NCBI RefSeq assembly: GCF_000315625.1
Contig: NW_005434477.1
Span: forward strand, 17,317 to 81,316
DNA length: 64,000 nucleotides
Reading direction: 5' to 3'
Source of the DNA: Guillardia theta CCMP2712
Taxonomy: Eukaryota > Protista > Cryptophyta
A program made the position numbers and the translations under genes. The notes under the pieces were generated by a model that worked only from the letters and a program-made list of their open reading frames with translations, was not told where the DNA came from and searched no databases. Shown here piece after piece: positions 15,759-59,537 of the stretch (position 1 is the first letter of the stretch; the number at the start of each line of letters is the position of its first letter).

Positions 15759-18055
15759 TCAGCTCGTCCGCCTCTTCTTCTTATCGTTGGTGACTTCCGA
15801 GATACCCGGCTGTCACCCAGCAGTCATCGACCCCTCTCACACAGCTGCTTTACCTTCACCTTCTTCAGCGACCGGTAGAGCAGCTCGCTAACGATGTCGG
15901 CTAGCTCCTCCGCTACTTCGAATGTTGGGACCGCAAGGACGCTGCACTTGCCTGCAGAGAGGTCAGCGCGGCGAAGAGGAGCAAGAGGAGGATGGGAAGG
16001 AGGACGAGAATGACGAGGAGGAGGACGAGGAGGAAGCTGAGGACGAGGACGAGGACGAGGACGAGGACGCTGTACCAGACTCGTAGACGTTGACATAGAC
16101 GTTGTCCTGCCTGCCCTCCCCAGCAGGGTCATGAATCCAGTTCTTGAGGCAGGAGATGCGGATGTAGAGCGAGAGGTTGTTGAATCGCGCCTGCAGGTGA
16201 CCCGTCACGGCCAAGAGACTTCAGCATGACCAGCTCACCGAGTTTCCCTTCTTGTTGGCAAACTGAACTCTCTGCACTCTGACGAGACGACAGACCGTCA
16301 GGCTGACCTCCTCTCAATGACGGACATACCGATCGGAGAATTCATGAGATTGCAGGAATCTGAAGAGAGCGTCCATGTTGAGCTTGATCCCAACATCTGA
16401 TCCAGCAGTCAGGCACGGAATGTCATCTTCGAGGTCTCACTCTTAAAGTTCATGTTCCAGCTTCCAAGAAGCGGCGCAGATATTATCTTGACGCAATCTA
16501 CAAACAAAGTCACTTACCGCTTCTACGTCTCCCCCCCTCCCTCCCTCTTTCATTCATTCACTCACATTCACTCACTCACTCACTGCTTTTTCTCTTTCTT
16601 CTTACCTTCTTGCAACAACTCGTCTGCGTTCTTCTTGGCAACCTTCCACAAAGTTGGCATACCTTTCTTCGCAGTCAAGAACAACAGAGTGAAAAGAAAG
16701 AGGATAACCAGAGCTCTTGCACATCTTATCGACTACTCGGATCATATCAACAGCGATTGTGTTGGCTTCGATCAGCTTATCTCTGCTTTTGCACCCGTAG
16801 GCCTGTGTTCTGCCATTGGACCAGACCCGCAGTTTGATCTCATCATCGCCCATCATCTTCATCATAAACGTGCATGAATCATACTGCTTCTTGCCATTGT
16901 GCTTCGGGTATGGATTCTTCGCTTGCACTGAAATCTGCGTGATCGTTCCCCGAGGATCATTGCAAGGCCAAGGCAGGGTGACCGCCTCCTTCACCGCAAG
17001 GATGTCAAACAGCTGGACATTCCTATCGTACATGCTCGGAAACAGCTGGCACAGACCAGTCGCAATGGCCTTGATCTCGAAAGGGTCTCGAGTAGGGAGG
17101 CTTTCGGGGTACAACGAGGTGGAGGGCCTGCAGGGATCATCTTCTTTCAGCGTCCTGCTCCTCTCTGACTTATGAGGAGCCGCTCGTTTCGTCTTTGCCG
17201 TTGTGCCGTGACGAGGCAGGGCGGCAGCACTCAGAACACTCCTGTTGCTCCCTCCTGCCATCAGGCTGAACGTCGTGATACCCGTTGGGCTCTTTGTCAT
17301 CATATGATCTGCAATATTGTAAATAGTAATATTGGTATTGTTGTTGCTGCCGCAGCCGGCGCTGATGTTGTTGTTGATGATGTTGTTGTTGCTGCTGCTT
17401 CCATCTTTGTTGCTGCTGTTGTTCGATGTGTGTATCTGTAGGGTTTGAATCTCTTTCAATCTAGATCCATTATCAATTTTTGGCTCATTTTGTTTTTGGT
17501 TTGGTCGCTGCATCCCGATATCAGGTCAGCCTCATCAAAGGATGCATTAGATTGTGTTGTAGAAAACTCAAGGTTATCAATTTGAGATTCTCCTCCCATC
17601 TCATGCTTGATAAGAGCACAGGCAGTGAGGTCATACGCCCTGCTGTCCTGACTCTCCTCCATCTCAAAGTTGTCCGCAACATTCGACGACTGGATAGCCC
17701 ACATCTCGGGGAAGTCGGCAGAGCGCAGGAAGTCTGTCTTGAGAGCCTGGGGGAGCTCAGACCCGTCAAACCCGACGAGCTTTGACTTGTCGTCCAGAGA
17801 GGAGACGCGCGAGAGAATCTCATCCCCCATCTTCTCCTGCATGTTGGCGAGCACCTGCTGGTTGATCCAGTCTTCACCCAGCGGGATGTTCTCTGAATTC
17901 AAATTCTGGTAGGTAAACTCTGGAAATCTTGAATACTCGATCGGATTTGACAATTGCTTGCTCAGATTGCCAGAAAACAAACCATTGCGATCGTCCTCCA
18001 TCATCTCAAAACCAAATCCATCACAATCATTTATCTGGTTGCTTGCTGCTACCAT
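15759..18055 (-). CDS. Divergent TATA-binding-protein-fold factor (TBP-like paralog A) with long acidic/Asn-rich N-terminus
   Basis: Repeat 1: FEIKAIATGLCQL…KKQYDSCTFMM…IKLRVWSNGRTQAYGCKSRDKLIEA. Repeat 2 after splicing: LLGSWNMNFKNVGIKLNMDALFRFL…ARFNNLSLYIRI…VNVYESGKCSVLAVPTFEVAEELA. Both parallel TBP's LIFxSGKxVxTGAKS. Ends DKKKRRTS*. Confidence 0.7.
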
Positions 18056-18499
18056 GGCAGTGGTTTTCACGACGTCTGGGGCTTTTCCGTTGTACCTACA
18101 ACGATTCAATCTTTGAGCGATCCGGCAATGCGTAAGCACAAAGCAGAGGATCCCCTGCTGTTTACCTTTGGTTTGAGAGCGTTTTATCTCTCGACATCCA
18201 AAGCTCGAGGGTCCTCTCAACCTTCATTGGAGCACTTTTGTAAGAAGAAGAATGAACGAGATCCAGTGAATATGCTCAACTGCAACTACAGGTTGTGAAG
18301 AATAGAAAAAAGCTGCCTCGTGTTTGATACTGTATAGGATAATAGATAACAAAAGAAACGGGCAGAATCGAGCCAGAATATTTGCTACGTATTAAGACGT
18401 GCATGCCCCTCTTCGATTCTACTCAAACTGCCTTTAATTTGATCCATCAATCTCTTGAAGAGAGTCAAAGGAGCATACGCTGCAACGGCATCCAACTAA

Positions 18500-56620: not shown

Positions 56621-57256
56621 GGCGAGAACATGCAGTGGTTGAGAGGGAGTACAAACAAAGAGGGTTGACCATGGCAGATGGTGGCAGAGGAGAGAGAGAG
56701 AGAGAGAGAAGGGAGTGAAGGGTACAAGAGGAGTGAAGAGAAGAGGTGAGGAGAAAGCAAGACAAGATGATAGGGAAGGAGAGGAGAAGGGAGGGGATTG
56801 AGAGATAGAGAACAGCCAAGGGATGGAGAATCGAATGGAAATGGAAGATGTGTTTAGTACTATTCAGGGCAGGGCAGGGAGGGATGATGAGATGATAATG
56901 GAAAAAGAAAACTCATGTAGAAAAGCGAGCAGAGGAAAGGCCGTAACACGATGTTCCTTGAAACCGACAGCTCAGGTGCATCGGGGGATAACAAAGGCTA
57001 GGACAAGGCAGGGCGAATTATGGATGCAAAGAGAAGGATGTAGGATGAAACTTGGGCTCGGAAGGAATGAGAGATGGACGGCAAGGGATATAGGTTGAGG
57101 CCAGGGAAAAGATGGAATGCAAGGACATGATGGAAATCGACAAGAACGTAGCCAAACAAAACTTTTTCTAACCATTCTGCCTACACAGAGCACTGTACCG
57201 AAAGTTCAGTTGGAGACCCCGTCGCAGACCTCCGGTCTGTCGTGATCTCCAATACC

Positions 57257-59537
57257 ATGCAGGCGGAGTCTCAAAACATGCAATTCAGGTGCCTTACTTG
57301 TATCTCCATGCTCTTCAAGTGTGCTTATCGACGTTGATTACAGCAACTTCGATATCCCAGTCACCGAAGAAGGAAGGGATCTGTTTGTCAACTTGTTGCT
57401 GAACACGGCAGAAGATGATTCGCCATTTGAATGCATGTTCGATGATTCGGAGGATTCTGCTTCTGTTGGTTACATCTGTCCCGGGATGACCTTGAATACC
57501 GAGGAAGTGCCGGAGGAAGAGAATCACGAATCTTCATCTCGTTACTGGACAACTCTTCGCACTCGAGTCACTGCCATGCGCGCTTTCAAGGGGGTGATGA
57601 GCACACTGCAGAAGAATTCAAGCCTCGGCGCTCGAAAGATGAATGAACAAGGAGAGGAAATTTCGTTGCAAGACCCAGCTTATCATCTGAACGAACAAAA
57701 AGGTGCTCTAGAGAATCAATCTGCAGGCCTTGAAATCAAGGAGATGGATTCGAAGTTGGCTCTTCTGAAACCAGAGATGAATTACAGCAAGAATGGTATT
57801 GATGAAGCACTGCACAGTATGGACGTGGAGGGCAAGGCTGTTTTCAGTCGCATCCCATCCCTCGAAACGGCCTGGAACCTTCCTGATCTCACCTTGATCT
57901 TCAGACCTCCGCCCAGTTTGATGGAGGCGATGGCGATTGGTATAAGTCCAGGGAAGTGGATCAAGATCGCTCCGGAGGCCCCCAATCAGGCTTTCAATGA
58001 GGGGAAGGCTAACTGGAAGATGTTGCAGTCGGCTGTGAATACTGGAATTGCATTCAAGCTCGTGGCAAAGATTGCAGGACAGACCAATGAGAGAGAGGCT
58101 GCGAATCGCAGGGCTAAAGTTCAACACGACGTGGAGCATTTCAAGAGTTTCCTGCTCAACATTACAAGAGCTTGGGAAGACTTGATGCACACTGAAGAAG
58201 AGCCCGCTGCTGATTGCAGCTTTGAAAGAGCTCCCTCGGATGTTGTTCCAGTGGATGGGATACCAGAGCGCGAACCATTTGTTACCAAAGCCATAGCAAC
58301 AGGCTTATGCAAGTTGTTTCCAAGACTCGTAACAGACCATGACACAGTCTTGGACATGGATCTTCTGGCTTTCCATCCACATTATCCTTGGCCGATGTCA
58401 AACACCAGCTTTCAAGTGATGGAGGCTGTGCAGATGGGCAAGAAGGGAGCTAGAAGTAGCGGCAAGAAGCAGCTGGACTCGTGCACATTTAGGATGAGGA
58501 CTCCGGGTTGCGATCAGATCACCATAAGGATATGGGCGAACGGGAAGACGCAGACCTATGGATGCAAGGACAGGAACATGTTGGAGGACGCGAACCAATG
58601 CTTAGCTTCGTTTATCCGCCACATCGACAACTACCACAGGATGAGCGGTGATTGAACTCACTGGAAGATGGTGATTGTCTCTTGATTCTTTTGATTGAAC
58701 AGGAAATCAATCTGTTTGGAGACTTTCACCGATGCAATCTGCAAAAGCACTATCGTGCTTAGGTGAGATGACGAAGTAGGTTTCATTCTTGCCATTGTCT
58801 CATCGCGCATTTCAGATGAGGTTCGAACTTTGTCTGCTCCTCTCCTGGGAAGCTGGAACATCAATCTTAAGAGTACGACTTAAGGTGTCTCCTCAAGGTT
58901 CTAACGAATGTATCTGCAGAGGCAGGAATCAAGCTCAACATGCAGGCACTTTGCGAGTTTCTTCAGCAATCGATGTTCGAAGACAGGTTCACTCCCTCCC
59001 GTCTTTCTCCTTCACTGCTCCTAATGCTCATGCCAGGGTCTACAAAGTTCAGTTTGTCGCTCAGAAAGGAAATTCTGTGAGTTTTTTATTGCTGCTTGCT
59101 CTTGTCTCCTCTCACCCTGACTCGTTTGACAGTCGAGATTCAACAACCTTTCTCTGTACATCCGCACCTCATGCTTGCTCACATGGAAGAAGGACGACGA
59201 TCTTGACAACCATCAGGACAACGTCTATGTCAATGTTTACGAGTCAGGTACGACACTCTCCTCCATCATCGTCTTGCCTGCTCCCCCACATCCTTGCAAT
59301 GCTTCCTCCTCCTCCTGCTTCTTCTCTTACATCTCACCGTTTCCTTCCAGGAAAATGCAGCGTGCTCGCAGTTCCAGACACAGAGGTTGCTGAGGAGCTT
59401 GCGGAAGTTGTCAGTGGGATGCTGTATCAGGCCCTCAGGCAGCAGGTACGACTAGATTGCAATGTGATGTTCTGATGTATCTGCGTCAGCCCGGGATCAG
59501 CGAAGAGATTCAGTCGTCCAAGAGGCGCAAGATTTAA
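57257..59537 (+). CDS. Divergent TATA-binding-protein-fold factor (TBP-like paralog B) with long acidic N-terminus
   Basis: PFVTKAIATGLCKLFP…GKKQLDSCTFRM…ITIRIWANGKTQTYGCKDRNMLEDAN…LLGSWNINLKKAGIKLNMQALCEFL…SRFNNLSLYIRTSCL…DNVYVNVYESGKCSVLAVPDTEVAEELA…PGISEEIQSSKRRKI*. Colinear with paralog A. Confidence 0.7.

Follow-up and report, generated by a model that had tools for sequence, protein, structure and literature searches.

Two spliced, divergent genes of the cryptophyte Guillardia theta encode a remote relative of TATA-binding protein (TBP), the factor with which transcription starts. Both genes are located on scaffold JH993161.1 (81,316 bp). The window, i.e. the whole stretch that was analysed, comprises the last 64 kb of this scaffold. 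Gene A (GUITHDRAFT_148237) occupies positions 15759-18055 on the minus strand, gene B (GUITHDRAFT_120836) positions 57257-59537 on the plus strand. An earlier reading of the letters without database searches (the sequence-only reading) had placed them at the same positions on opposite strands and regarded them as candidates for an alternative basal transcription factor. The analysis assigns both to a cryptophyte family with the TBP fold. The preferred interpretation, held with a probability of roughly 0.55, is a nuclear TBP-related factor that would bind the minor groove of a non-TATA element and regulate a set of promoters via partners other than canonical TFIIB, the N-terminal module serving as cofactor or signal input.

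The TBP fold and the gene models

AlphaFold predicts the core of gene B with a pLDDT (predicted local distance difference test) of 85.5 and a pTM (predicted template modelling score) of 0.77. The order S1-H1-S2-S3-S4-S5-H2 of strands and helices occurs twice in the model, together with a helical linker. Foldseek searches against the PDB yielded TBP or TBP-containing chains on all ranks from 1 to 41 (E from 1.5e-5, probability 1.0, template modelling score (TM) by target up to 0.72), the TBP structures among the matches being 10-15% identical in sequence. The Pfam family TBP (PF00352) recognized gene B and its ortholog from Hanusia with 23.6-26.6 bits, above the gathering cut-off of 22.9, in the N-lobe only. 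The gene A exon alone reached 14.7 bits, which is under the cut-off; at E ≤ 0.1, matches were present in 15 of 20 family members. The short C-lobe exons gave no Pfam match, and nothing significant came from sequence searches of the PDB in which exon 1, the B core or a family profile served as query. The two halves of the core aligned poorly with each other (p 0.79 in A and 0.04 in B). The sequence searches, against the PDB and profile against profile, were null or marginal; only the structure search identified TBP firmly. With the predicted model, membership in the TBP fold is secure, while sequence alone hardly reveals the relation to TBP. The saddle suggested by the sequence-only reading is borne out, and all near-identical motif blocks that it quoted are present. 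A screen for the vertebrate-type TBP signature detected none among the retrieved loci.

The window genes were searched exon by exon, and the database proteins P0001 and P0004 were used where a spliced protein was needed. Hand-spliced models were the basis of the alignment, the ratios of nonsynonymous to synonymous change (dN/dS) and the tree. The spliced cores comprise 290 amino acids in A and 288 in B, with 145 of 287 aligned positions identical (50.5%). Seven introns, one more than had been counted before, are common to both genes at the same alignment column and in the same phase (1, 1, 1, 2, 0, 1, 0), all with GT-AG borders. The internal core exons measure 57/57/67/40/115/98 bases in A and 60/57/67/40/115/95 in B.

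Gene B encodes 605 amino acids counted from the ATG at 57257, a start backed by the Hanusia ortholog; the NCBI model begins at 57112. Its first coding exon (57257-57288) is followed by a long exon (57344-58647) with an acidic stretch, the conserved N-terminal module and the N-lobe of the core, which starts at 58263 (Pfam TBP, E 7.6e-4). Core exons 2-7 extend over 58703-59445 (58703-58762, 58816-58872, 58920-58986, 59037-59076, 59133-59247 and 59351-59445), and the last exon (59490-59537) carries a basic tail resembling a nuclear localisation signal (NLS) and the stop codon. The core equals that of the NCBI protein EKX33003.1 and also that of the transcript-derived protein P0001 from Hanusia phi, which is spliced at seven of the seven sites. 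Splicing of gene B is confirmed by this Hanusia transcript. The first long exon as query retrieved proteins from Hanusia phi and Hemiselmis, the cluster of which includes EKX33003.1.

Gene A follows the same plan on the minus strand. Exon 1 (16709-18055) encodes the N-terminal extension and the N-lobe, with the core starting at 17096 (Pfam TBP, E 0.028 for 16710-17096), and is frameshifted in the assembly. In the spliced alignment, exon 2 (16606-16662) represents the inter-lobe linker, exon 3 (16441-16497) strand 1 and exon 4 (16330-16396) helix 1 of the C-lobe. Exon 5 (16239-16278) contributes strand 2 and the start of a non-acidic stirrup. Exon 6 (16076-16190) holds the conserved equivalent of Phe190, strands 3-4 and a Tyr at the Phe207 position. 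Strand 5 and helix 2 of the C-lobe are located on exon 7 (15854-15951; alignment and AlphaFold), and the last exon (15759-15809) provides the basic NLS-like tail and the stop codon. The gene may start further upstream, through a possible coding exon at 18166-18227. This exon is the start of the NCBI model and is separated by a GT..AG intron (18165-18096), the donor of which is kept in relatives.

Distribution, descent and the state of gene A

In two sensitive searches, the named family members were all cryptophytes, from the seven genera Guillardia, Hanusia, Proteomonas, Rhodomonas, Geminigera, Teleaulax and Hemiselmis. The other members were environmental sequences without a species name, a few of them mislabelled as archaeal. 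Pieces of genes closely related to one environmental cryptophyte member (L245:8637-11271, plus strand) have been deposited at NCBI under the proteins of one archaeal metagenome-assembled genome (MGB1594311.1), likely a bin contamination. This member has a single core intron, at a position without counterpart in G. theta. Family sequence and profile searches retrieved neither TRF2 nor named dinoflagellate proteins. Public annotations read 'hypothetical' or 'uncharacterized', and no description of the family was found in the searchable literature, subscription journals being outside its coverage.

A metagenomic eukaryotic TBP as query identified canonical TBP in Teleaulax amphioxeia and Hemiselmis andersenii. 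These proteins stand apart from the family, match the query with 81-83% identity and have four Phe, the YEPE.FPG motif and an intact acidic stirrup. Because these two species carry members of the family as well, the family is an addition to TBP, not its replacement.

Genes A and B differ at 0.73 of synonymous sites (pS, saturated) and 0.35 of nonsynonymous sites (pN), with dN/dS of about 0.17. With synonymous sites saturated and dN/dS this low, the two copies are of old date and under selection rather than duplicated by the assembly. A recent segmental or assembly duplication was rejected: third positions are saturated (14/62 identical), and DNA similarity occurs in three short exon patches only. 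In the core tree, the A sequences from Guillardia and Hanusia come together on a long branch (100/100), and B and a Teleaulax sequence join this clade (86/94). This grouping and the seven introns shared by A and B, against one elsewhere in the environmental member, indicate a late duplication in the Guillardia/Hanusia line. Gene A would be the later, fast-evolving duplicate and gene B the ancestral type. The sequence-only reading had proposed a lineage-specific, duplicated and selected family that is neither canonical TBP nor an obvious TRF2 or TRF3; these points are supported, selection being purifying, and the separate canonical TBP for which it had asked as a check exists in Teleaulax and Hemiselmis.

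The earlier hand-spliced reading of gene A had overlooked a frameshift. The 5' part consists of two overlapping frames, so that the 5' exon is not open throughout in the assembly. The A-run at 17493-17497 contains five A's, whereas six A's and a single open exon of more than 500 codons are found in two metagenome contigs of about 95% identity to gene A. An intron as cause of the frame change was ruled out, the relatives having coding sequence straight through. Exact look-ups of the frameshifted open reading frames yielded no match. The public model GUITHDRAFT_148237 (433 amino acids; 16606-18227, minus strand) is wrong, with an intron invented over the frameshift and a premature stop in intron 4.

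The frameshift is probably a homopolymer sequencing error and not a null allele of this strain. That gene A has recently decayed into a pseudogene in strain CCMP2712, leaving B as the sole active copy, is rather unlikely. Such a loss would fit the one-base frameshift, a weaker donor of intron 1 (GTTATC versus GTGATC in relatives) and the Hanusia transcripts of A, which exist and, as far as observed, retain introns. However, a one-base difference in a homopolymer is a typical sequencing error, and the remaining splice sites are all intact. Between gene A and the two close contigs, dN/dS is 0.13-0.17 in the core (p<1e-4) and 0.21 in the first N-terminal part, values not above those of the contigs between themselves.

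Altered surfaces, the N-terminal module and the proposed role

TBP is among the most constrained eukaryotic proteins, and the two stirrup Glu form the TFIIB/Brf contact of TBP and its paralogs (PMC7221094). In the family, E186 and E188 (yeast numbering) are replaced by N/C and A/S/V in 14/14 members. The loop reads GN[SA]RF and is conserved anew; 13 of 14 members have no acidic residue in the stirrup loops at all. The basic patch of N-lobe helix 2, five K/R in yeast-like TBP, is reduced by sequence to one to four K/R, mostly placed elsewhere in the helix and accompanied by equally many acidic residues. From these replacements, the loss of direct TFIIA and TFIIB binding is predicted.

Only one of the four intercalating Phe is kept: F99 is variable, F116 is replaced by Trp (16/16) and F207 by Tyr (14/14), while F190 remains Phe (14/14). 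Also retained are the G-K turns in the two lobes, G125 and, in most cases, a basic residue at position 105. The DNA face is changed yet conserved, with L114 replaced by R/K (15/16), V122 by Q (14/16), L189 by R, L205 by N and V213 by S/T/C. TRF2/TBPL1 has a Trp at the same N-lobe L5.1 position (PMC7221094); TATA binding is absent in TRF2 (PMC4422821). The Phe set, the acidic stirrup, the helix-2 patch and the core conservation all depart from canonical TBP, from which the sequence-only reading had also set the pair apart. Its designation of the pair as an alternative basal factor is weakened by the replaced stirrup Glu and the largely lost helix-2 patch.

All B-type proteins, from six genera, share an N-terminal module of about 135 amino acids and an upstream basic helix. 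In gene B, the module (57789-58190) consists of a PDL..IFRPP block, helix 2 (58014-58055) and a long coiled helix. It has no Pfam or PDB match and no convincing viral match. AlphaFold models most of it with a pLDDT below 50 and one long helix with 62-72; poor folding of the module alone would be natural for a segment that acquires its fold on contact with a partner. The unrelated, acidic N-termini described earlier are no more than mildly acidic (D+E 14-16% versus K+R 9-11%), and 'unrelated' does not hold, the module of B being family-wide and lost in A. Gene A shows a non-significant echo of the module start only. Its own N-terminus is under selection and has been kept in Hanusia (38%, E 5e-55); the comparison indicates that the module was lost after the late duplication. 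The Teleaulax member P0007 has no module either, although a close environmental relative has it (P0007 versus P0042, P0033). Further paralogs or a second loss of the module may lie behind this.

Calmodulin targets of the 1-8-14 type are basic amphipathic helices with bulky hydrophobic residues at positions 1, 8 and 14. The corresponding pattern, W/hydrophobic-x6-V-x5-F, is present twice in B-type proteins; helix 1 of gene B (57546-57587; W-x6-V-x5-F) is amphipathic, and this helix has a net charge of +3 to +6 in these proteins. The two helices resemble calmodulin targets, which may serve as a lead.

A basic NLS-like C-terminal tail, anticipated by the sequence-only reading for both genes, was found in 10 of 12 members. 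No hydrophobic signal peptide was found in the family proteins. A nucleomorph- or plastid-targeted TBP was rejected on this account, and nucleomorphs have a TBP gene of their own (supplement of PMC4230888).

According to the preferred interpretation, the factor would reside in the host nucleus beside the ordinary TBP. Its concave sheet would lie on the minor groove of DNA, with the G-K turns and the aromatic tips W, F and Y kept. Because the hydrophobic A/T readers are replaced by conserved polar residues, a non-TATA and possibly G/C-containing element would be read, with a less symmetric kink of the DNA. Docking of TFIIB/Brf via the usual acidic stirrup should not be possible, and for this reason the protein would be a promoter-selective regulator rather than a drop-in TBP. 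It may act by marking promoters, by activation via other cofactors or by blocking TBP. In the ancestral B type, the conserved, conditionally folded module probably contacts a cofactor.

Several points weigh against this interpretation. The DNA-contact residues F99, N69, N159, T124, T215 and R196 are lost, and DNA binding itself may be gone. Residue equivalences were obtained by anchoring each strand to the predicted secondary structure instead of superposing coordinates, and the register of C-lobe strand 1 is unsure. A comparison of profiles with real TBPs from archaea and eukaryotes gave a marginal result (E 0.003-0.008, low probability). Canonical TBP is known from two other family-carrying species; the nuclear TBP of G. 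theta itself was not seen directly. The calmodulin pattern occurred 11 times versus 0.14 in shuffled sequences, a circular figure since the pattern was defined after viewing the sequences.

It seems unlikely that the family forms an alternative basal factor which nucleates a pre-initiation complex at one class of promoters together with a divergent TFIIB/Brf paralog, co-evolved to fit the non-acidic stirrup with its contact residues in the way inferred for giant viruses, or that it serves Pol I. The stirrup is newly conserved, not degenerate, which suggests a partner. Viral TBPs lose the stirrup Glu and have co-evolved TFIIBs, and Rrn7/TAF1B does not use the two Glu (PMC7221094). The best viral fold matches are TBP-like proteins of nucleocytoplasmic large DNA viruses (NCLDV). 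On the other hand, a canonical TBP with intact stirrup is present, and little is left of the helix-2 patch that TFIIA, Brf1, TAF1 and Mot1 use. A divergent TFIIB partner was not seen, and no search was made for one.

Regarding the origin, the domestication of a giant-virus TBP-like gene in the cryptophyte ancestor, instead of a duplication of host TBP, is distinctly unlikely and would be compatible with any function. NCLDV TBP-like proteins reach better Foldseek E-values (1.5e-9, TM by query 0.54) than cellular TBPs do, but E-values are not comparable across libraries, and identity is 8-15% to viral and cellular matches alike. Long inserts and the loss of the stirrup Glu are common to the NCLDV proteins and the family, and the single core intron of the environmental member would suit a viral source. 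However, neither IMG/VR viral contigs nor protein searches contained a viral relative, about 90% of viral L5.1 positions are Phe (PMC7221094) as against W/Y in the family, and the neighbours are ordinary intron-rich host genes.

A bolder proposal is a second, TFIIB-orthogonal initiation system in cryptophyte nuclei, with its own non-TATA element and the polymerase recruited via a co-evolved adapter or the N-terminal module, possibly switched by calcium/calmodulin and possibly derived from a giant virus; it is improbable. A TBP-fold protein outside transcription initiation, with a role on RNA, RNA:DNA or as protein scaffold like the TBP-like lobes of RNase HIII and RnlA, is quite improbable: the C-lobe L5.1 Tyr is typical of bacterial lobes binding RNA-containing duplexes (PMC7221094), RnlA occurs among the weaker Foldseek matches (ranks 43-47) and many TATA contacts are lost, but two lobes are fused with TBP spacing, full-length TBPs outrank every single-lobe protein, domain searches detected no fused nuclease and the NLS-like tail is conserved.

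Surroundings of the genes and comparison with known systems

The surroundings of A and B are ordinary intron-rich host genes. Genes at 988-1656 (minus strand) and 3722-4906 (plus strand) and in the flanks of A and B encode cyclin N-domain, alcohol dehydrogenase, EF-P, FKBP and ANTH-domain proteins. Long open reading frames at 30760-34760 (plus strand) with TRIP12-type ARM/TPR repeats probably belong to a HECT E3 ligase gene. An intronless leucine-rich-repeat reading frame of 1289 amino acids (40151-44020, minus strand) is unusual for this intron-rich genome. Tandem arrays with units of 17, 27 and 4 bases are located at 62124-62514, 44048-44511 and 39035-39288, besides many GAG/CAG microsatellites.

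An assembly gap (Ns at 50469-50568) lies between the two genes, at a distance of 6.7 kb to B and 32 kb to A, and touches neither gene or reading frame. It falls in a purine microsatellite in an intron of an unrelated kelch-repeat gene on the minus strand (49630-51000). Kelch-like exons flank it on both sides, a downstream exon with a clear Kelch_1 match (E 5.5e-8) and the two exons nearest the gap, one per side, with weak matches (E 0.06 and 0.18). Sequence continuity is likely because of these exons, and a kelch exon may be hidden within the Ns. The distance of 40 kb given earlier for A and B is approximate, since the true gap length is not fixed.

The main survey of TBP evolution ties paralogs to animals and considers the Glu pair for TFIIB binding to be conserved in every major lineage of eukaryotes (PMC7221094). 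Yet an extra two-lobe TBP-fold protein is kept across at least seven cryptophyte genera. It is as far from TBP as the viral versions; its DNA face and stirrup are conserved in a new form, and its Trp has a parallel in TRF2. For the question whether a saddle can acquire specificity for a non-TATA element and function independently of TFIIB, the family provides a natural test.

By its features, the family is a member of the TBP fold which is neither canonical TBP, TRF2 nor dinoflagellate TLF. With canonical TBP (PF00352; yeast Spt15, 1ytb; Arabidopsis, 1qna) it shares the two-lobe saddle, the order of strands and helices, the G-K turns, the Phe at position 190 and an N-terminal extension. It differs in an identity of 10-15% to TBP, against about 80% among eukaryotic TBPs, and in a core of about 280-290 amino acids with long inserts, a helical inter-lobe linker and a C-terminal NLS-like tail. 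F99 is lost, F116 and F207 are W and Y, E186 and E188 are missing, and the helix-2 basic patch is mostly gone.

Metazoan TRF2 (TBPL1, TLF) is likewise an extra paralog beside TBP, with the N-lobe L5.1 Trp (family 16/16), an incomplete Phe set and, as predicted for the cryptophyte factor, a non-TATA action. However, TRF2 belongs to bilaterians, has about 40% identity to TBP and binds both TFIIA and TFIIB (PMC4422821), whereas the family is restricted to cryptophytes, far more divergent and without a TFIIB stirrup. The common Trp is best read as convergence. The NCLDV TBP-like proteins (ChoanoV1 A0A5B8IQX1, HaV01 A0A1C9C511, the asfarvirus B263R homologue) are the best viral fold matches and have a similar divergence, long inserts and no stirrup Glu. 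A sequence-level relation is missing, and the family consists of spliced nuclear genes in a host context, with W/Y and not Phe at L5.1. The TLF of the dinoflagellate Crypthecodinium is also a protist-specific divergent TBP with an altered Phe set and paralogous clades. It appears to replace TBP and binds TTTT (PMC5029490), while canonical TBP is kept beside the family in Teleaulax and Hemiselmis.

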